A stretch of 63,551 nucleotides of DNA, counting the filler, from Choristocarpus tenellus KU-1152 (lineage: Eukaryota; Protista; Phaeophyceae): assembly GCA_964200185.2 (NCBI GenBank). It is 11 parts of 11 records of this genome, joined end to end, with 100 filler letters (N's around TTAATTAATTAA, not from the genome) between each part and the next. Parts side by side here need not be neighbours in the genome. Positions count along the whole stretch, not along the records: positions 35,863 to 45,899 come from CAXNAD020003190.1; 10 more parts are not named here. One strand, 5' to 3'. The notes below the pieces were generated by a model. That model worked only from the letters and a program-made list of their open reading frames with translations, was not told the DNA's origin and did no database searches. The position numbers and the translations under genes are program-made. Below, in pieces: positions 18,720 through 45,899 of this stretch (the stretch's first letter is position 1; every line of letters begins with the position of its first letter).

Positions 18720-20040
18720 GCCTACACATACTGATGATTCCGACCCAAAAGCCCTCCAAAACTCCATTCCAGAATGGTATTTCATTGAATCCCCTGCGAC
18801 ATTTGGGGGGAGCTTGCCTACCTCAGCCTTTTCCTTGCTAAAGTGGGGGAATTTGTAGACATTGTCACCCTTTAACCCCACCACTTCGCTGTAGACTGCA
18901 AAGAAGCTCTGCAAGACGCTCTCTGGTGTCTCCAGGGGGCACATATCTGATGCCTCCATTGTGGTCTCCACCACCTCCTATATTGGTCACCCCCACGTCT
19001 TCCTTCAGTTGTAGGATGGAATGAAAGAATCCCAGGTCGTTGACATTAAGGCCAGCTTACTTGGCTGGCTGGGTCCCTATGGCAATGTCGTCCCCTACCG
19101 CCTCCTCAATTGCCTCCATGATCTCCCCTTGGTGCATGACTTTGCCCTGTCCTGCTATGAAGGTGGTGTGTCCTTCCGGCCTAGGCATGTGGATCTTGAT
19201 TGCTGGGATGACACCCTCGATCATGAGCTTCTTGTAACTCTCCCCGTCCACCGTGGCTGGCACAAGCACCTTGGTGCCCTTGGGGAGGTGTTTGCTGGAG
19301 CGCTGAGCGATCTTAGTATCCACAATTGGGCATATCCCAATTTTCCCATTGAACAACACCCTGTTGGAGAACTTCCTTGGACGGGCCACAACTGCAAGGA
19401 ACATCAACTTCGTAATGTAACGCTTATTCTTTACCTGTAAGGTCCTCAGTAGGGTGCACGTACACCCCTTGGCCATCTCTGAGGATGTAGAACCACTTCT
19501 TGTCCACATGCACCCACTCATACGGATCTTCCACTAATACCCCACTTCTCCCCCCTCTTGTGCTTGTGACAGATGAAGAAACCCACCCTGTGGACTTTCT
19601 GCTGGTCTGAGAGGACTGGCTTAATCCACCGCTTGACCTTCACCTTCTCGCACTTGCACATATCCCACAACGAGGCAAGGGAGACCCCGCTTTGGCTGCC
19701 CATCTGCGGCAGGATGTGTGTTATACAGACGGGATATCCCAAACATCGAGGATACTTATATGGTGACCACATGGCCCCTTGCAACCTTGTACAAGGTTCA
19801 TACATTCACCACATATGATCTGGCTGTCATACTCCTTCAGATGACAGAACACAGGGATTCGGGAAATTCTGAAGTCCTCTGCAATGGATGCTGCCGTCTC
19901 CTGAGGCATCCGAGTCTCATGCCCCCTTGCCTCCAGGCATAGCACCACCAACCTGTTCCTCATCGGGGAGTTTGAGTCCGAACCCTGGACAGACTTCTGG
20001 GCAGAAGAATTAGGACTGACGGGTGACAATGGGGGTACTT
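18720..20040 (-). pseudogene. Second mariner-like transposase pseudogene (different subfamily)
   Basis: RWIKPVLSDQQK, VHVDKKWFYI, ITKLMFLAVVARPR, FNGKIGICP, VIPAIKIHMP and GDNVYKFPH motifs spread across frameshifts. Confidence 0.9.
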
Positions 20041-21250
20041 TGTCCTAAGCACCCCAATAAACACCCGCTTTGACAGTTTCAGGAGGTTGAACCTAATCAA
20101 ACGTGACTTGGTCGACTTGGCACTGGTGATCCTCCGCAATCATGACATCCCACTATGTCAAACTTTGCACGCCTCCCAATCTACATGAGACCTAAGCCTC
20201 GTCCAGAGGGTTTATCCCATGGGTCGTTCCCAGGCGAGAATGATCTTGCAAATTCATGATGCACTTAATTCCATCCCAGGGGAACTATTGTGTATGGAAA
20301 GCTCGCAATCCTGATTCATGTCCCTACACTGTAGAAAAGTAAATAAGTGGCACAGGCTTCTAAGAAATAAACAAACACCATGCACAAAGATGCACCCTCC
20401 AGCTGTACACATGGACAACCAAGGCACCTTACATGGTTAAGCATTGGAAACAGAGGGGATCTGCTGCATGAAGGCACCTTACACTAAAGGAAGTTACCCT
20501 CAGCACACCATCCGGTCTGGTAACATACAGCATCATGATTCTGAAGCAATTGGAACTTCAAGCAATATTAATAACAAGTGGTGTGACACCTCTTGGTACT
20601 GTCCTTGAAACCCCTTCAGGCTTGTCCACTATAGTCCTACCACTTCACTCTCACAAGCACTACTGGTACCTGTGAACAGTAATGGCCTGCTTCTCTTGCC
20701 AGCAGGACCAGCAACCTCTTCTTAACTTGAACTGACACAAATTTATTCTCCCATCATAGGAAACAACAGGCACAGACCAAATCAATCGATTCATTATTGG
20801 AAATCCCGATAATGTCTGTTATGGCATGCTCCACTGCAACATGCTGTACTGTACATAAAACTAAAATCATGGTGTGGGACATAGCAAATGCTGCCCCACA
20901 CAGATGGGCAACAAACTCCAAGTACCCTCCAGCCTTAACTTCCATGCAGTCAACCACCAGACAGTAATAACTGAACATACACTCTCAATCAATATTGTGG
21001 TAAACGTGAACACAACCAAGACCTCTGAGAACCCCAATATGAAAATCAGGCGCCACAAAATTTCCCAAGCCGAAATTCCACTTAACATTCCACCACAAGA
21101 GTCCTCCGCTCACACAATATACTCTCAGGTTGACTACAGTACGGCATGATACTGACGGTGAATAGCACGTGCCCCCCCCCCTCCCACTCTCCTCTATAGA
21201 AGGAAGATGCAATGAAGCTTCATCCTTCATCCTCTCTCCCCTCCTTCTGT

Positions 21251-35762: not shown

Positions 35763-36168
35763 NNNNNNNNNNNNNNNNNNNNNNNNNNNNNNNNNNNNNN
35801 NNNNNNTTAATTAATTAANNNNNNNNNNNNNNNNNNNNNNNNNNNNNNNNNNNNNNNNNNNNGTAACCAGGCGTGAGGTTTCACGAATGCGCTCGGGGAG
35901 CATGTGGTGAGAGGGAGGGTGCATATTTCGTCAGAATCGTGTCTGTTGAGTACAAGACCGGTACCCACAAAACATTTATCGGGGGTAATCTATGGTACAT
36001 TTTATTGTAACATGCGACGATCACTACACAGGAGAATGCAATATTTTTCAATATTGTTTTTGTAAAGGCTGTAAAGGCTGCCTCGTACAGAAGTTGCACC
36101 AGATTTTTTTGGCTGCCACCCAATACAAAAATTAGCTATCAACTCCCCTCACGAAAAAATCGACTTAC

Positions 36169-39100
36169 CCAGTGAGTACACAGCAGCGAGGTGCTCGTGC
36201 GACGCCTAGTACTGCTGCTCCACCTTCAGGATGACGTGTTCAGGAATGCTTTTGAGCTGGTAGGGTGGTGCATCTTGGATACGAGGCGGGTGGCCGATGA
36301 AGAGGTCGTGCGGAGGGGCGTTGAGGTCGATAGCAAGGTCTCCCCCTATCCCACTCCATTCGGTGCTGTGCATGTATTGCTTTACGCTAACCTTAACCCG
36401 CCCATCACCGCCTTTTTCAACGCGAAAAGTCCTGTAGGTCGTGATATTGGGGACACGGTTCACGCGACCACGAAGGAGTCCCTTGAAGTTGCCCTCGTTC
36501 CGTAGGGTCTTGCAGTAGACAGGAACCTCCGTGCAAGAGGCCTGCAGCTCATCACCCAGCTGTGTTCTCGTGAATATGTTCTTCCGTTTTATACCACGTG
36601 AGAACCTGAAGGTGAAATGTAAGCAAGTTAATTTTGAGGCGGGGGCGAAAGAAACGAAGTGGAGAAGCAAGATATATATGGAGGCACATGCTCCTCATCA
36701 TGTATATGGAAGTATAGATATAAAAAGGGGTGATGCGTACATTTTTGTTTTGTTTTGTTTCTACAGTAGTTTACAAAACAGTTTTGGCAGCTGCTCTTAT
36801 CGTTCAATTTTGTTGTGGGGAAATCAAAAGCCAATCAATCAATTGCAGTATATGACCATAAACCATACATGGATGCAACAAGCGTGAGCCGCAAGTCTCA
36901 AAGTAGTATCTGTCCGTATCAAAACACTATGTGGCTATCGAACTTGCATATCTTGCCTAATTACCTGGAGAAGATCTGATCGATTTTGATGTGCGTGTGC
37001 CCCACCATCATAAAATGTATCTCGACCACACGAATGATACTCGCCGCGACCAACACCCTCGCGTATCCGAGAAAGAAATTGTTCTTGTTCTCTGAGATGC
37101 AGTTGTCGACCTGGCCAGCTTGGGGAGTTGGGAGCGAGTGAAGAATAGGCGTGAGGCCGATATTTCAGCCCATTTCGCCGCGTTTCGTGGAGGAACAGGG
37201 TATGTTTCCAGTAATGCTAGAGCGCAACCTCTACATCACCGCTATCATACATGCAACAAGCAACACACAAACCAAAACTAAAGACCGTGCAGTTAGATTT
37301 TTGGTGATCGGTATTCGTCGAGTGTGTGTTGAGTAGGTCGTGTCAAGATGAAACTTTCTTACCTGCCAATGAGCGTGCTGGATGATGTGACTCCCCGCAT
37401 GATCGAGGCTGTTGTGGTACTTGTCGATAAGCCTTGTGAGGGCAAGGTGGGTGGCTGTGCAGACAAGGTTACAACCTACGCGAATGATGATGTCCGTCGT
37501 TAGTTGGCAAAAAGTACTCTGCTTACTTATGCATTGTTTATTTGGAGCTAAAAAGAGGGGTAATGGAGTTTGTTTTTACAAAGTAGAGCACATACACCCG
37601 AATGGCTGATATACATGTCTGTGGGTTTTCCTCCTCGTTGATTAGCTCTTACGCTCCTCTCGCCCTAACTCTAAGCTGAGGCGTAGGAGGGCAGGGGAGC
37701 ACAGCGCATAATCGACTGTTCACTAGGCCTGCGGTATCTGTAGGCACATCGTGTAGGGATGTACTCTTCCTTGGGTATCTAATCTTAGACAGGTCCACTC
37801 GCCACGACGGTAAATCAAGTGGTGTGTGCGCTGAAGCATCTATTCAGTCATGTTATTGTTTGCCACGACCAACATTACGTACCTCCTCCAAGATTGATAG
37901 GAGTGAAGAACACCTCTGCGAACTGGCCTTTGTCGTGTACGGCCATGATCTTTTGGCGCTCGGAGTAGCCCCAGATAAGAAGGACATGAACCAAAGAATC
38001 GTGTACAGAAAGGTTCTACGGTGTGTCGCCATGATGATGACCGGAATAGGTAGTGGAATTATGTGAGTCTGTTTTGGCGGTTATTTCTTTGGATTTTGCA
38101 CTCGTTCGTAAAATAAAACAGGGTCGTCTATTCTGTTCTGCGTGCGGCTGCAAACATGTTGTCAGATGGACTATGCGTGCGTGTGGTTACCTGTCACCGC
38201 CATGGGTAGGTGGGTAAAGTGTTGGGAGGGCGTGTGTTGTTTGGTTCGCGGCGTCTACGGACATGAACACGAAGCCGAGAGGTTTGCCATCGGCTTTTGC
38301 CCGCATGGCGCAGCTGGTGCTGTTGGCGATGACCAGCCAATCCACTTGGATAATCTGGCGAATTGGGGACAGCAACATCACGTCTGTAAATCAAATAAAT
38401 CTGCTCAGAGTTTTTAAAAAATGGCCACTTGTTAACACGTATCAGGTTAGTAACAAAAAGTAGTGTAGGTAACAATTAATGTTTGTCTTTGGATATGCTT
38501 TTTAATGCTGCATTCAATACAAACATAGTGTTATCGAGATTGTCGGAGCCCGTACGTACGGGGCCTGAGAAGCCGCCACAGGACCTGTCCCTCCTACATC
38601 CCGTTGTACATGACCAGGAAGCAGTATATCATACAACATGTGTGGGCAGGTAATAAGAACGTTTTTGCGGTGATTGAGGGTTAGGCTGCTGCCGTTAGCA
38701 CCTGCGTGGGAGTCTTCATTCGCAAAAGGAAACATATGTTCTTCAAAATGGAGGGCAATGACGGCGACATGTTGCCACTGTACACTTGTTGCAAAATTAA
38801 CGCTGGACACATACCTCTCGATGGTATGACAGCTCCTTATCGATGGAGTCGAGGATGGTGGAGTCGTTCGAGGGTTTTACACCAGGCGCACCGTGCCGCT
38901 TCTCTTTTAACGTGACACATATGTCACATTTCATAAACTCGCCTCCTACCCTCACTCTGATGTTGGGCCTGTCCTCTCTGAACAACCGGAGGAAGTGCGC
39001 CCTGCTTACCGGCTTGGAAGGGTTGTCAGGATACACCCGTATTGCCTCTTTGCAAAAATCCTTGAATAGCTCCTAATTAAAAATGTTGGTTGTGTGGGCA

Positions 39101-40628
39101 AGTGAGGAGTTATTGAGAAGGAACACTCGAAGAACACCCCTGGAAGATCTCTCGGAGGCGGACTGACCAATAACTTGACTGAGAACGCGGAAGACAGGAT
39201 CAAGCAAGCTTACATCGTGCGTTATGAAAGAGCAAACACAATGATCTTCGTAAATCTGCCATGAGCGTCATTCTTATCGGGCCTCGCTGCCGTTTGCAGA
39301 AGCGGCAAAGGAGGCGAATCTACCATCATCATCATCATCATCGCGAAGCGCTTTAGACACACAAAGTACACACTTTTCCTACCAATGTCAGACCAGGACC
39401 GGGGCCACAGAGTATGTGTACACAGCATCGAAATAACAGTTACTGTGCCTTCCTTCGTAAAATCGACGAAGAGTATCATCATGAATATTGTAATCTCGAC
39501 ATAGCAAACGAAAAAAATAGCTCTTGGTATGAATCTTGACATGTTCTTTGAACATTAATATCAGACCGGTCCAAGTAATGAACATCCTCCAACAAAGGGT
39601 GCGGCCAACCTCTCCACAACTAAGGGCAAAACTTACCAGTTTGTTCACGGCATAGATCACAATTGTGGACTTGTGAGGCATGAACTGCCCGTATGTATCA
39701 GCCCAGTAGTCTATCCAGGACATCACCAGGTCTCGCTTCGGAGCCATGTCCTTATCTTTGCTCATGCCGTTCCTGTTGTAGTAGCGCACGTATGTATATA
39801 AATGGATGGGAGATGTGTTAGAGGTGGATACGAAGGACGGGGGATGGAATCCTAGAAGGATCGTATGCCAACAGCGGATCTCTAATTCTGTAGATGTTTA
39901 CGCGTGGTAACAGCTGCAACAGCGTGGGGACGGCCGGATGAGATCATAAAAAAACATATCGCATGTGTACATACACACATAGGTAGGTAACACATTACTC
40001 CACGCTGGAGGGATCCCTAAATTTGTATATTAGACATCTAGGCATGGTAACTGCAAAGTGAATGTGGTGAGTACGGTCGGATGACATTATTCTCAGATAG
40101 GACGGAAAATATACCGGGTACAAGTAACACCGTGTACATACATCAAACCCACCTATCCACACCGATGGATGCTCTTGTGTTAGGTGTGCCTTTGCAAGCG
40201 TCGATGACATGATTGGATATCCCGAACGATGCCTTGAAAAACTGCGTACTGACGGGAATGCTGGCCGTGAGCATAGATCCACCTCCAGGTCCCAACTTAA
40301 TCACAGGTACACGGTCGCCAACGAAGTGCTTGTGATCGCGGCGGTTCTCACACACCCGGATGATGTCCTGCTCTTTGGCCAAGGTGCGTGCAAGGAAGGA
40401 CTCGCCATCTGCCGCGAACTTCTTCACACAGGCTAAGCGCTTACAGCAGTCACTCTGTTCCTTGACCGGGATGGGTTCAGCCCATCCTCGGCGAAGCTTG
40501 GCGCCGGTCACTGAAGCTTCATTGGTAGGAAGCTCCAGCGTATCATTGTTGGCGGGCTGGTGAGGGGGCAACACGGGGGGAGACGCAGGCGACAAAAGCC
40601 ACCCCCTTGCTGTGGAAGCAACTGTCAT
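36169..40628 (-). pseudogene. Intron-rich Sola/DUF7869-like DDE(D) transposase, slightly decayed
   Basis: Exons 40628-40153, ~39790-39637, 39072-38815, 38354-38191, 37971-37883, 37475-37363, 37110-36965 and 36605-36169; phases are compatible from the 39637 donor onward. Motifs FFKASFGIS, SWIDYW..YGQFMP, FMKCDIC, SVDAANQ..LP, QVDNCISENKN, MVGHTHIKIDQIFSR. In-frame TAG at 36206-36208 and two damaged acceptor sites. Confidence 0.8.
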
Positions 40629-40699
40629 AGTGTTTTCGGGCAATAGGCGGTCTTGGGCAGTGAGAAGGTCTAGGAGTGATTAGATTCGAAGCCATGCAT

Positions 40700-41220
40700 A
40701 CGAACTTCGTTTGAGCCCCGGGCGGACGATGGGGCCACCCTGAGATCCATATCTTGAAAATCCGTGCATTACGCATTTTGGAAATTGTAATTCAGATTCT
40801 AGTATGTGATTTGTATATTTTTAGATAAATAACATACTTCATTGACATTGTACGTTTCCAATGTTCCGAAACTAACTTTGTTTGATCCTTGGGCTATCGA
40901 TGGGACCACCCTGAGATCGATGATCCTGAAAATCCGTGCATTACTTTTTTTCGGAAATTGTAAATCCGATTATATCCGTGATTTCTGTATTATAAAATAC
41001 AAATCACATACTTAATTGGTCGTATACGTTTCCAATGTACTGAAACCAACTTTGTTTGTGGTCCGGGAGATTCATTGGACCCGTCCTGAGATCCATGACC
41101 CTCAAAATATTATAATTTTTTTTACGGAAGTTGTTAAAACGATTATACCCATACTTACAATTTTTTGAAATACAAAGCACACACTTCATTGATCTCGTAC
41201 GTTTCCAATATTCAGAAACC
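40700..41220. repeat. Tandem array, ~172-175 bp x3
   Basis: ccctgagatc...gaaaatccgtgcattac...gtttccaat recurs, with anchors at 40756, 40928 and ~41103. Confidence 0.85.
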
Positions 41221-41880
41221 CAGAGATTTAAAAAATAGTGCCACCATCTAATTTTTTTTAATACAAAATCTTAAGTTGTTGGACATATGCATTCTTAAAA
41301 CCTCTACAGACGACAAAAAGGGGTTATTTGAGTATTGAAGGGCCATTTAGTTCTTCGAAACTCAAGGACACCCAAAACAAGTGCATGAGGATTTTTGGAA
41401 ATAGTAAACCCAGTAATAACCGTTCTTACCCTTTTTGAAAATAACAAGCACGCACTTCATGGGTCTCAAATGTTTCCAATTTCCATAAGCTAAAAGGTCG
41501 CTTCCAACTGGTACCCACAATTTATTTAAATACTAAAACCGCTTTTTGGCGACCTTAGGATTTTTGAAAATACAAGAGACGACAAAAAAGCAGATCTATA
41601 GTTTTCAAGATCCATTTGAATGTTCTAAACCCAACAACAGCCAAACATGTGCGTTAGGGTTTTACGAAATAATAATGGTATTGTAATCTTTACATCAACA
41701 AATACAATTACAAACCACATCCTTCATTGATCCAATAAGTTTCAAACGTACGAAATGAAAAGTTCACAAAAATAGTTGCTCTCTGTCCCATTTCAATATG
41801 AAATCGTATGTTGTTTGATATTCGTATTTTTTATAACACAATTCTCAAGGGAAAGATAAATCTGAGTTTTGAAGACACAC
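41200..41880. repeat. Degenerate ~270-bp tandem repeats
   Basis: cttcat(t/g)g...gtttc(c/a)a anchors at ~41201, 41472 and 41739; gacgacaaaaa at ~41309 and ~41578. Confidence 0.6.
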
Positions 41881-42002
41881 TGACCAGATGAAATGAAGCA
41901 GCACCTCCCATCCCTCAGTCCTCATTTCAATTCATTCACTTTCGTACATACCACACGGACCTGTTATTTATCGATCTCCATCACACTCTCTCAATCTTCG
42001 TC

Positions 42003-45000
42003 ATGTCCAGCATTCCCTCAACAACAACCCACCCGCCCGCCGATGGCTCTGCCCAAGGATCGAGAACATGGGACAGCAATCTGAAGGGCATGTCATCGCT
42101 CCTACAAGATCACTACCTGGGCACGTACCGGATGAAACTGGGCAACATCAGATGCACGGAGATGGTGCGTCCACTGAGCGAGCGTGGTCTTGCATGTGTC
42201 AGCACGTCCATCCACGAGAAAGGCTGGCTGGAGCAGTTTGTTCCGCCTATCGCTATCCAGCGAGACTGTTTAGGTAATGTAGACCAGCTCACCGCCGAAA
42301 CTGCGCTTACCATTGAAGGACGTACACTGGACGGAAACCATAGAATAACGGTGCTGAAGAGAGAGTTTGATCCCGAACGTGCTTTCATCATGCGGGTCTA
42401 CATGGAGTTCAACCAAGCAGAAGAGAGACTAATTGCAAATGGTGGGTGATGGAGTGTTTTCGTTGTTTCATGATCACCTGGTGACTCTGATCAACCAAGC
42501 AACAAAGTAAGTTGAGTGTTTTCGTTGTTCCATGATCGCCTGATGACTCTTCTGATGTACAAATTGTTGCCGAGTTTCCTTACCTTGGTTCATCGTCAGT
42601 TAGTCCATTGAGGATCTTTTCGTTGTTGATCTTTTTTGTGGTATTTCTGTCCGCAGAAGCATGTTGCTCAGTACTGCATGCCGCGTGTGTCCCGCGACCG
42701 CTCCCCACCTACCCCTTGTCCGATTTGCCCACTGGACCGCCACGCTTATAGCATTCAACGACGCGACCGAGAGTGTGGTTGAGCGCACACCGTACAATAA
42801 GACATATTTTCAGCACGAGCTCCAAGAACCTATCAAGCGACAGACGAAGAAAAAAGAAGTGCCACTAGTAGAGACCCGCAACATGTACAAAAAGGTGAGG
42901 GAGTTGTCAACGTTAGTGGGATGTTGGCGCTCTACTCCTCCTCTAGTTGGGTTACAACTGTTGTGAAATCTCTCTGTGTCCTCCTATTCAACCTAAGTTG
43001 AGATAGTTATCCCGCGTTTAGGAACCCTGTCAACCAACTTATTGATTTACGGGTGACCATGTAGTATGTATGTGTGGTTAACCACGGACAAACAATAAAT
43101 ATATCCTTGTTTGTTTTATCATTAGGCCAGGCCGCTGAATAACACCCCCCCCCACTCATAATACCCCGTTGGCGCGGTAATAATGATGCCTCATCCTAGC
43201 TGACTGGGTGCATGATGTTGTTCTTTTCTGCCCATCACGAAGGTGGGCGTTACTCCCCGGCCAAAATCAACTGTACGAAACTGGCAGCAAGGCGTAAAGT
43301 CCCTTAAACCAGAGTCCTTCGAGGTACTGAAGGAAGTGTATGAGACCTCGGCACCACAGGTCGACCGCTACGCAGTCACAATGACCTATCTCAGTCGCGA
43401 GGAGTTTGCCGGCTTCACTTCTCTCAAGCAGGGGTTATGCACCCATCTGCTTGCTAGGCAAGTCAAAACGCCACTGTGTTTTATTATGTAGACAGCAGTA
43501 AGCGCAATGTATGCAGGTCGCAGCGCATTGCACAGGAACGTGAAATAAGTGTCTCCTACGATGAAGAATGTTGTCGGCCATTGTTGTGTCGAATGAAGAC
43601 CCTTCGTAGAATTGTGTAGATTCTACGAACAGTGTGTGTTTCCTGTGTATATGTGCTGTTGTCTTTAATGAACTACGACAATCAATCCATGAATATTTAA
43701 TGCATGGGCGACCCTTTCGTCATCATTACCTGCGCATCGTTCTCGTTGACGTCGTTCATGGCCATTCTCTTTTTGCAGATACAAGTCGTTCAACGGGAAG
43801 GTTCCTACGGTAAGGGACTACAAGGACATCGAATCGGACTTGCACATGTCTGAGATAGTTGTCTCGCGCACCATGCAGATTGTGCCCAAGGAGAAGTGGA
43901 CACCAGAGCTCCAAAGGTTGGTAAATGGTGGAAGTTACAGCGATTATCTTCCTTTTTTCCTTTTCCGTATCTCCTGTGCACCCATACGTGGCCATGCACC
44001 CCTCAATTGTAAAATGTACTGTCAGCATATTTTTCGGCACCGCACTTATTGACTATTGCAAAACTTTTTTTTGAACGTTACGTGGTCTAACTTCTGCAGA
44101 AGATTTCATCTGGCAACCAACAAGCGGGGCCCGTCCGGCAGCTGAGGGCAAACATCGCGACAGTAGTTGGAATGAAACCTCTGCAACGGGTCAGAGCCGT
44201 GAGTGTGCTTCCTGTGTTGGTAATTACAGCTGAAATGGCTTGTACAAAAACAATTAGTTGAAGCTTGGTAGGATTGATAGTAGGTTTTTGTCATCATCAT
44301 GAGCGACAGAGTTGCCTTCCGTACAACAAAGAGTGAAAGTATCTTTGAGGGTACAAGTTTTGCCCTGTTTGCCCATTTGGGGCTTGGCTTCCCTCGAGGT
44401 TTTTATGACATTTTCCTACTCCATAATATTTCGGAGTAGGAAAAATGGAGATGTTATGAAAAGGTGTGTTTGGAACAAGGATGTTGACACCTCCTAACAA
44501 CACGGTATCCAAAATTACATTAAAATTGCAACACTGGATTTTGGCCCCCAAACGGATGCAGCTCTGCCCTCTAAGATACTTTGGCTCAAACGATGCTGTT
44601 TTGTCAGTTCTAGTCTTTCGTTACTAATACCGGGAATAGCCAATCGTTTCCTTCTACTCTAGACAACAATCTTCGTCAATCTCCACCACGTGTCTGCCTC
44701 CAACACGTGTCACTGTCGTAACCTACAGACAGACTGGCGTCCTCGACATTGACTTCTTTCAAACTATTTCGCCCCGCAAGCCGCCTCCATTAAACACGTT
44801 CACCACGTAAACCGATAGGTTTGCTCCGTTCGGTTGACATGCTATCGTAATTCCATTACACTCTCCCATTTTTGACGTCACCATCGTCCCCTCCTCTCCT
44901 CAACAACGTCCTCCGCCGTGTCCACCACCAGATTCTCGAGAAGGACTCGACTCTACGCGCTTACCTCACCACTTGGGATGGGAAATACGATGATGTCCTC

Positions 45001-45899
45001 AACCAGGTCAACCTCCACCAGATTCACAGCGGGCGGGGCAGTGATGGCGGCGGCACGGACGTCGAGAGCAACAACGGATCGGCATCAGATGGCCGTGAGA
45101 AAGAAGACGATGGAGGGTGCAAACACCAAGGAGGGGATGGAAACGAGGGAGGGGACGAACACAAAGGAGGGGACGAAGACGAGGGAGGGAACGGACTGCC
45201 AGACAGGAAGGATATGGGCGAAGGGGGTTCTGTCGGCAGGGTTTCCGGTGCGGAAGAAGAACAAAACGGCCATGGAGGGTGGAACACGAGCATTTGCTGT
45301 ACTGAATGCAATCCTCCACCTACGTCTCGGTGAGTAATGTAGTTGTAACGGTGCACACGAGGATGGAGGGTAATTAATGGCTTAAGATTGTTTTCCTTCC
45401 AATCCCCCAAACAGCTAACTAGGTTGTCTCTTTTCAGTGGTGCACGCCATTAAACCGGTGAAACTTGTGGGGTCCCTCTGTGTGTGGCGCTGCGGTCCCT
45501 ACCCCCACGTCTCTTTATTTGCCACAGTCCGATTGTGTGTTAATGCATGTACATCACTGACTGTTGTATCTCACCTGTACTACGTCGTACTGTGTTGAGC
45601 CACCAATTTCGTGGTACTTCGTAAACATGGATCCCCGCGCTGCGTTGTTGCGCCCAATTAATGATTTGGAAAAATACTATCCTGTCTGTTTAACGCTCTC
45701 GTTCGATGACACGCGCGACAGGTATTCATGCCCAAAGTGCTCCATCACGCATATGGACGAATGTGCCTACGTGGAGATTGTAAGCGACGAGAGGCACAAG
45801 GATCGATTATGTATCAATTGCCCCATGGCACAGGAGGGCAGTGAAGGGTCTGGATCGGTGGGGAACGAAGCGGCGGGTCGGGTCAGGGGCAGGGGCAAG
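42003..45899 (+). CDS. ParB/sulfiredoxin-like N-terminal domain + HTH-like region + acidic Gly-rich linker + C4HC3 PHD-like finger; 3'-truncated by a gap
   Basis: Exons 42003-42441, 42752-42894, 43243-43457 (GC donor), 43779-43920, 44932-45329 and 45722-45899 join in frame. Motifs VRPLSERGL...SIHEKGWL...LDGNHR, KSTVRNW, and CTEC-x9-CPKC-x3-H-x3-C-x15-CINC. Confidence 0.75.
44331..44587. mobile_element. MITE family B copy in an intron of the ParB-like gene
   Basis: GAGTGAAAGTATCT...AGATACTTTGGCTC, TSD AAA. Confidence 0.92.

Follow-up and report, generated by a model that had tools for sequence, protein, structure and literature searches.

Is a pair of divergent genes that looks like a new kind of transposon in a brown alga really new, and what would its second gene do for the element that carries it? 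The question is raised by a stretch of 63,551 nucleotides from Choristocarpus tenellus KU-1152 (assembly GCA_964200185.2), 11 parts joined end to end, which we call the window. One of its parts, the piece at positions 35863-45899 (CAXNAD020003190.1), holds a DDD (three-aspartate) transposase gene, T, on the minus strand and a ParB/Srx-domain accessory gene, P, on the plus strand. We conclude that the piece is very probably a 10 kb internal part of a giant cut-and-paste DNA transposon of the Sola1 superfamily, in a copy that is old and inactive, with P lying head to head with the Sola1 transposase gene. It is not a new kind of element: it belongs to a kind that was described in 2025 and not to a new superfamily. 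What is new here is that six diverged lineages share the head-to-head pair, with relatives of P named in five brown-algal genera, that the ParB domain of P is of the DGxHR type, and that the Pfam family DUF7869 is, as judged by sequence similarity, the core of the Sola1 transposase. We regard this as a refinement of annotation rather than a discovery.

The piece has a GC (guanine plus cytosine) content of about 47%, many short open reading frames (ORFs) and clear GT-AG introns, which together mark it as a eukaryotic locus. Its main features are the following.

36206-40628, minus strand: gene T, multi-exon, a DDD transposase of the Sola1 superfamily (from Pfam, from tblastx with loci L007 and L004, and from a by-eye match to the Ectocarpus element Sola1-1_Ec32)
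40629-42002, no strand: divergent spacer shared by T and P, between their start codons, 1374 bp, 36% GC
42003-45899, plus strand: gene P, running off the edge of the piece (from contig joints, splice sites, annotated spliced relatives and exon homology in other loci)

The transposase gene

A reading made earlier from the sequence alone had placed a spliced minus-strand gene with a D..D..D triad at 40628, and this holds: T starts with an ATG at 40628, matches DUF7869, and has three locatable aspartates. Comparison by tblastx with L007, a metagenome scaffold that carries a whole T gene, recovered nine conserved coding blocks within 40628-36209. The blocks and the catalytic residues lie as follows.

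40628-40182, 39735-39652, 39006-38812 and 38357-38191, minus strand: conserved coding blocks of T (tblastx with L007 and L004)
37970-37881, 37476-37423, 37113-36967 and 36694-36209, minus strand: further conserved coding blocks of T (tblastx with L007 and L004)
38253-38255, minus strand: D1, catalytic aspartate, in FMSVDAANQ, a motif also in Sola1-1_Ec32
37105-37107, minus strand: D2, aspartate in QVDNCISENKNN (QVDNC..ENKNN), a motif also in Sola1-1_Ec32
36979-36981, minus strand: D3, aspartate in MVGHTHIKIDQIFS (IDQIFS), a motif also in Sola1-1_Ec32

Two pieces of T match the DUF7869 profile, 36964-37164 over profile positions 57-113 (E 1.1e-20) and 36209-36694 over positions 113-191 (E 1.1e-5). 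Set by eye against the printed transposase of Sola1-1_Ec32, T agrees in its motifs from the N-terminal CC.RL.C to the C-terminal PPY.LK, with PKRD...MP, FM.C.IC, the D1 motif, GY(S/G)ER.K, VDN..ENKNN, FMMVGHTHI.IDQIFS and PNIT in between, and about 29 of 49 residues around D2 and D3 are identical in this by-eye comparison. The Ectocarpus transposase had itself been classed by its best blastp match to Repbase Sola1-1_PPa (PMC12477816 supplement). Since T matches both this transposase and the DUF7869 profile, and carries a Sola-type DDD triad, sequence similarity points to DUF7869 as the Sola1 transposase core, a family that no paper found in our literature search mentions. The first exon of T also holds a CCKRLAC motif (40428-40448), with the counterparts CCNKLKC in L007 and CCRLNC in Sola1-1_Ec32, which may be part of an N-terminal zinc- or DNA-binding region of Sola1 transposases.

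The sequence-only reading had taken the pair for an undescribed superfamily of two-gene transposons. In favor of that view, Pfam holds the transposase core only as DUF7869, a family absent from the literature that we found. However, T matches the curated Sola1-1_Ec32 transposase along its whole length and the pairing with a ParB-like gene has been published for Ectocarpus (PMC12477816), so that a new superfamily is now very improbable. A large two-gene DNA transposon family with the pair as one unit is the part of that reading that survives; its novelty does not, and neither does the term composite transposon, as no two insertion sequences flanking a cargo are seen.

Copy number and linkage of the pair

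Contigs of four public runs were mapped to positions 40000-45899, and the counts given here come from three runs of one organism. These runs contributed 2,006, 13,218 and 10,106 contig pieces, mostly 90-95% alike, which fill 30 of 30 bins and take in genes, introns and spacer. Contig pieces this similar over exons, introns and spacer indicate that the unit is a high-copy repeat. A sister copy from the same C. tenellus assembly (GCA_964200185.2), L018, aligns to 43166-45899 with 87-92% identity through exons and introns. Contig coverage and sister copy together reveal the dispersed multi-copy family expected of a Sola1 element, and they lend strong support to the earlier statement that the unit was copied as a whole.

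Related loci were fetched through homologues of P exon 1. All those with enough upstream DNA show exon 1 of T on the minus strand and exon 1 of P on the plus strand, 0.7-0.95 kb apart, with these identities.

L001: P 66%, T 56%
L008/L009: P 42%, T 33%
L015/L016: P 41%, T 33%
L004 (Sphacelaria rigidula): P 34%, T 28%
L007 (metagenome scaffold, whole T gene): P 32%, T 32-59%

The head-to-head layout is thus present in six diverged lineages, the window and five others, down to about 30% protein identity, and the identities of P and T drop in parallel across loci, as expected of one co-inherited unit. By this pattern of sequence divergence, the pair appears to be inherited as a single unit across brown-algal Sola1 lineages. 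Segmental duplication as the source of the recurrence was ruled out by the six diverged lineages and the high copy number.

The P family has been found in the named species Choristocarpus tenellus, Ascophyllum nodosum, Sphacelaria rigidula, Pylaiella littoralis and Ectocarpus sp. 12, the last through a model (P0110) with VLDGNHR and blocks resembling exons 2 to 5. Outside the window, the T/P pair itself can be attributed to one named species, Sphacelaria rigidula. Two of the lineages, L001 and L015 (66% and 41% identical to P exon 1 of the window), come from the same Logan run, SRR25569785, and several old Sola1/ParB lineages therefore seem to coexist in one sample.

Decay of the window copy

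Comparison of the window copy with L018 gives 90.4% identity in exons and 91.2% in introns, and the changed codons comprise 17 synonymous and 69 nonsynonymous differences. Exons that are about as similar as introns, together with this 17:69 ratio, indicate neutral decay. Four lesions or insertions are seen in the window copy.

37972-37973, minus strand: lost 3' splice site of T, before the exon coding GYSERQKIMAVH (the GYSERQK exon); CTG/G here, CAG/G in L007
36206-36208, minus strand: TAG stop in T that looks premature, since similarity to L007 continues in frame past it
44084-44089, plus strand: about 108 bp deleted here by comparison with L018, with loss of the acceptor and 5' part of exon 5 of P and a frameshift
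44331-44587, no strand: insertion of 257 bp in P intron 5, resembling a miniature inverted-repeat transposable element (MITE), with terminal inverted repeats (TIRs) of 21 nt (GAGTGAAAGTATCTTTGAGGG and its complement), absent from L018

The word depth of the MITE-like insertion is about 100-fold above its surroundings, and hence the insertion is one copy of a small element that is very abundant in this genome; its flanks suggest an A-rich target duplication of 2-3 bp. In the Sphacelaria copy L002, exon 3 of P is interrupted by an in-frame stop (VRN*TIV, L002:5006-5008), and this copy is a pseudogene as well.

These observations bear on whether T and P might be immobile host genes, either a domesticated transposase beside a chromatin protein or a segmental duplication. 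In favor of this, the piece holds a single copy and displays no termini. Against this, there are hundreds of diverged copies that include introns and spacer, the family lies on many unrelated contigs in several species, and the window copy shows both neutral decay and lesions that inactivate it. We consider the host-gene explanation barely credible.

The ParB/Srx domain of P

The earlier reading of a spliced plus-strand gene with a DGNHR motif from 42003 also proved sound, with an ATG at 42003, the motif in place and matches to the ParB/Srx fold.

42090-42441, plus strand: ParB/Srx-fold domain, about residues 30-146 of P exon 1 (predicted structure and motif)
42330-42344, plus strand: DGNHR motif of P (LDGNHR), located in the sequence

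A phmmer search of P exon 1 against 1.84 billion representatives returned 97 relatives, nearly all of them short ORF calls that stop at one and the same exon boundary. When 54 of these relatives were aligned, D110 and G111 proved invariant and H113, R114, R56, G62, G74 and P81 nearly so, the H and R of the motif being kept in at least 90% of the 54 sequences. AlphaFold2 modelled this alignment with a mean predicted local distance difference test (pLDDT) score of 86. When the model was compared with PDB structures by Foldseek, all of the best 50 matches fell in the ParB/Srx superfamily, including ParB-CDP, PadC, the pNOB8 ParB-N domain, Noc, KorB, Atu1540, sulfiredoxin, SbnI and a serine kinase, and in an exhaustive fold search 12 of 14 matches were ParB/Srx. 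The model has an alpha/beta fold with a phosphate-binding motif (GxxR, DGxHR or GCHR in this superfamily) after the central strand. On the predicted structure, the assignment of the P N-terminus to the ParB/Srx fold is solid.

The kind of ParB domain matters for its possible function. The motif of P is of the DGxHR type found in Srx, Osa, ParB-type nucleases, DndB, GmrSD and SerK, and not a GERRxR box. None of the marks of a ParB clamp dependent on cytidine triphosphate (CTP) was found, namely the GERRxR box, a helix-turn-helix (HTH; looked for in the homologue P0024) and a nearby parS-like palindrome (looked for in the spacer array). The sequence-only reading had invoked the CTP-dependent clamp; this amounts to an analogy, because P has DGNHR in place of the GERR box. 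A few relatives of P give weak Pfam matches to DUF6551, DndB, GmrSD_N and DUF3723 (E 0.02-0.12), and a literature search found no paper that names DUF3723 together with ParB.

The same features raise the possibility that the domain is an enzyme rather than a DNA tether, whether a nuclease (Osa, ParB-type), an NTPase (nucleoside triphosphatase; GmrS/DUF262) or a kinase (SerK, SbnI), for which DNA-end processing or attack on competing DNA would be conceivable roles. The motif type is common to Srx, Osa, DndB, GmrSD and SerK and differs from the GERR box of clamp ParBs, and SerK, SbnI, Srx, Osa, SspE and BrxU are among the fold matches. The best fold matches, however, are the DNA-segregation-type PadC, KorB and the pNOB8 ParB-N domain, and fold alone cannot separate these activities. 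An enzymatic role is therefore a possibility of some substance, though a minority one.

Exon structure and the remainder of P

The exon model of P in the piece is as follows.

42003-42441, plus strand: exon 1, ATG at 42003, 146 codons
42752-42894, plus strand: exon 2 (joints and relatives)
43243-43457, plus strand: exon 3, followed by a GC-AG intron
43779-43916, plus strand: exon 4 (joints and relatives)
44100-44198, plus strand: remnant of exon 5, its 5' part deleted
44932-45329, plus strand: exon 6 (joints and relatives)
45722 to beyond 45899, plus strand: exon 7, cut by the edge of the piece

Contigs of run X1 include joined forms with GT..AG or GC..AG ends at 42441/42752 (with one mismatch), 43457/43779, 44198/44932 and 45329/45722. 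The annotated models P0003 (Choristocarpus tenellus) and P0006 (Sphacelaria rigidula) join exons 1 and 2, and in part exon 3, exactly as predicted, and the C. tenellus model P0107 supports the junction of exons 6 and 7 by reading ...CCTECNPPPTSR before it and YSCPKC... after it. Further support comes from the annotated spliced relatives P0024, P0108 and P0110. The exon-1 product of the window itself had no exact match among the contigs. About 540 codons are covered by the seven visible exons, and the full protein probably has about 1,000 residues; in Pylaiella, P is represented by two adjacent gene models of 454 and 527 amino acids (aa).

Two introns of P have peculiarities of their own. Intron 3 (43458-43778) uses a GC-AG splice pair with the donor GCAAGT, and its joined form occurs in a run X1 contig. 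Intron 1 contains a 37-nt direct repeat (42452-42488 and 42514-42550, 92% identical, 62 nt apart) at which run X2 contigs show back-joints, and this suggests that the number of repeat units varies among copies.

From its N-terminus onward, P consists of the ParB/Srx domain, a helical region, a linker of acidic, low-complexity sequence, a finger-like Cys/His motif and, beyond the piece, more conserved blocks. Searches and folds were run per exon or with database gene models rather than on a joined multi-exon protein. The helical region was modelled on the Sphacelaria homologue P0024 (P0024:136-301), with exon pieces from several loci as alignment rows. The model is all-helical (pLDDT 73), and Foldseek returned unrelated helical proteins at best (E 0.26), with no HTH match. 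The HTH label of the sequence-only reading is accordingly backed by no search. The next two regions are visible in the piece itself.

45103-45193, plus strand: 18/36-bp tandem repeat in exon 6, coding a Gly/Asp/Glu-rich low-complexity stretch (repeat finding)
45298-45821, plus strand: Cys/His pattern C-x2-C-x9-C-x2-C-x3-H-x3-C-x15-C-x2-C across exons 6 and 7 (read from the sequence, junction by P0107)

Acidic low-complexity sequence stands at the same place in L002, L018 and P0108. The Cys/His pattern offers eight ligands, as in PHD or RING fingers, with a spacing at the histidine unlike that of PHD; P0107 gave no match in Pfam or PDB, and the motif is not visible in the Sphacelaria copy L002. 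With neither a database match nor the right spacing, the earlier PHD label is unsupported.

In the sister copy L018, P extends past the point where the piece cuts it off, and its C-terminal blocks (L018:2999-4340) are conserved in Sphacelaria (L002:7757-8092) and Pylaiella (L019:13850-15215). By eye, these stretches contain 'SVADPPM ... LHPKGTMVFFVP' in L002 and 'GDTV..S....(R/K)VE(V/I)F' in L018 and L019, which recall, in degenerate form, motifs IV and I of beta-class N6/N4 methyltransferases; we offer this sequence resemblance as a lead only. On the plus strand of the piece after 42003, where the gene is cut at 45899, there is no [DNS]PP[YFWH] motif.

The spacer

The divergent spacer had been described as about 1.4 kb of AT-rich tandem arrays, in agreement with what was measured: 1374 bp at 36% GC, with one array of the following extent.

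40727-41220, with degenerate units to about 41750, no strand: tandem array of 173-174 bp units in the spacer (repeat finding)

This array is specific to the window's family and absent from the spacers of other lineages, and the spacer contains no perfect palindromes of 7 nt or more. A parS-like site in the array was considered and dismissed on both grounds.

Relation to known elements

Classic Sola1 transposons are described as having a single gene and a length of a few kb, and the Sola superfamily with its group Sola1 was reportedly defined by Bao, Jurka and Kapitonov in 2009. T shares with that group a DDD triad in conserved motifs and a eukaryotic cut-and-paste mode; the window's clade differs from it in being giant and in having a conserved second gene. 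Two-gene DNA transposons are themselves familiar, as PIF/Harbinger elements have a Myb-like ORF and CACTA elements have TnpA. They resemble the window in pairing a transposase with a second co-inherited, presumably DNA-binding protein, but their second proteins are unrelated to P, whose need in transposition is putative.

The closest relative is Sola1-1_Ec32, a 21.5 kb giant Sola1 element of Ectocarpus whose ParB-like gene and transposase gene lie on opposite strands (Genome Biol 2025;26:320, PMC12477816). Its accessory protein of 1,104 aa combines a ParB-like domain with a DNA N4C/N6A methyltransferase domain, and its termini are AACCG..CGGTT, with an imperfect TIR of 282 bp and a target site duplication (TSD) of 4 bp (PMC12477816). 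The window resembles it in its transposase motifs over the whole length of the protein, in having a ParB-like gene on the other strand, and in its high-copy, brown-algal setting. The accessory genes, likened through the published description only, share a ParB-like N-terminus opposite a Sola1 transposase, and the length of P in Pylaiella (454 + 527 aa) comes near the 1,104 aa of Ectocarpus. Unlike in the Ectocarpus report, a methyltransferase domain was not detected in the visible P exons or in the downstream blocks of relatives. Two features, the Cys/His finger and the spacer array of 173 bp units, may be particular to the window's lineage as compared with Sola1-1_Ec32.

A second parallel is PAG3, from a red-algal Plavaka element (CACTA/EnSpm-like) of Bostrychia moritziana, which joins an N-terminal ParB-like domain to a 2OG-oxygenase and adjoins tandem arrays (10.1101/2025.02.11.637652). 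PAG3 and P are both accessory proteins of giant algal DNA transposons with an N-terminal ParB-like domain and a tandem array beside the gene. They differ in transposase superfamily, in the 2OG-oxygenase domain and in the arrays, which are inverted-repeat arrays in Plavaka and a direct, palindrome-free and unconserved array here. Compared with bacterial ParB, Noc, KorB, PadC and sulfiredoxin, P has no Pfam ParBc match, carries DGNHR in place of GERRxR and shows no recognisable HTH, and unlike the bacterial ParB, Noc, KorB and PadC it is encoded by a eukaryotic gene that has introns and lies within a transposon.

A possible role for P

We propose that T would excise and integrate the element by cut-and-paste, and that the ParB/Srx domain of P would bind nucleotide and DNA and so tether the C-terminal portion of P to the DNA or chromatin of the element itself. 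The tethered protein might then either aid the assembly of the transposition complex or set an epigenetic mark on the element. This is the role that has been proposed for the ParB-like and methyltransferase gene of Ectocarpus Sola1-1_Ec32 and for Plavaka PAG3; the Ectocarpus authors suggest that such accessory proteins bind and epigenetically modify their own transposon (PMC12477816). The functional idea of the sequence-only reading, a partner that would act on the element's DNA or chromatin, agrees with this published speculation.

Alternatively, P may be passenger cargo, a gene of host or foreign origin that an ancestral Sola1 took up once and that plays no role in the life cycle of the element, as in Pack-MULEs or other cargo of giant transposons. 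Giant algal transposons do bear many accessory genes to which no role has been assigned (PMC12477816), some loci have P and no T, and any biochemical function of P is putative. On the other hand, the head-to-head layout and the intron position at the end of exon 1 are kept down to about 30% identity, and DG(N)HR is invariant; such conservation suggests that purifying selection has acted for a long time in lineages where the element was active. Plavaka is, moreover, an independent case in which ParB-like accessory genes have turned up. We therefore hold simple cargo to be unlikely.

A bolder form of our proposal is that P is an ancient, obligatory partner of the brown-algal Sola1 clade, joined head to head to the transposase gene before Choristocarpus, Sphacelaria, Fucales and Ectocarpales split, in which a nucleotide-gated ParB-like module loads a DNA- or chromatin-modifying C-terminus, possibly a degenerate methyltransferase, onto the element. 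The clade would then be a genuine two-component lineage of Sola1. We put this forward tentatively, as a suggestion that may well prove wrong.

Several observations weigh against the interpretation of the piece as a giant Sola1 element with a ParB-type partner. The ParB assignment comes from a predicted structure and a short motif and has no support from Pfam, NCBIfam or PDB sequences: no P exon of the window matches any Pfam profile, ParBc and related profiles included, P has no NCBIfam match, and a PDB sequence-profile search with the ParB alignment found phycocyanins, which were judged spurious. Searches of Pfam, NCBIfam, ESM Atlas and PDB profiles revealed no methyltransferase or other enzymatic domain, either in the visible P exons or in the blocks further downstream in L018, L002 and L019, and these downstream blocks matched none of the profiles. 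The spacer array, without palindromes and unconserved, gives no support for a parS-like site. The type of run X1 is unrecorded, so that its joints may represent complementary DNA or intron-less DNA and are no proof of transcription. Three loci, L005, L006 and L019, have a P fragment with no T within 10 kb upstream; retrotransposon or Helitron-like genes are nested in these loci, which have the appearance of copies that are broken or non-autonomous. Finally, the ends of the element lie outside the 10 kb piece, within which no long inverted repeat was found. The identity of the T and P proteins, their linkage and their copy number are plain from the data; with termini, TIRs and TSDs outside the piece, mobility as one unit is suggested by copy number and synteny.

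In L006, a decayed copy of P has a fragment of a long terminal repeat (LTR) retrotransposon (RVT_2, RT_RNaseH; L006:11264-14088 and 19763-20221) nested between its exon 1 and its exons 4-5. In L019 from Pylaiella littoralis, Helitron-like genes (PIF1 helicase, DUF6570; L019:851-6225) lie within the 10 kb upstream of P instead of a Sola1 transposase.

ParB-like domains fused to DNA- or chromatin-modifying modules recur among the accessory genes of giant algal transposons, in Sola1 of Ectocarpus and in Plavaka and Mutator of red algae. The lineages described here indicate that the Sola1/ParB pair is a fixed head-to-head unit and not an oddity of Ectocarpus. If P does mark or tether its own element, it would give eukaryotes a parallel to plasmid-style ParB systems, and the self-regulation of transposons would have in it a tractable model.

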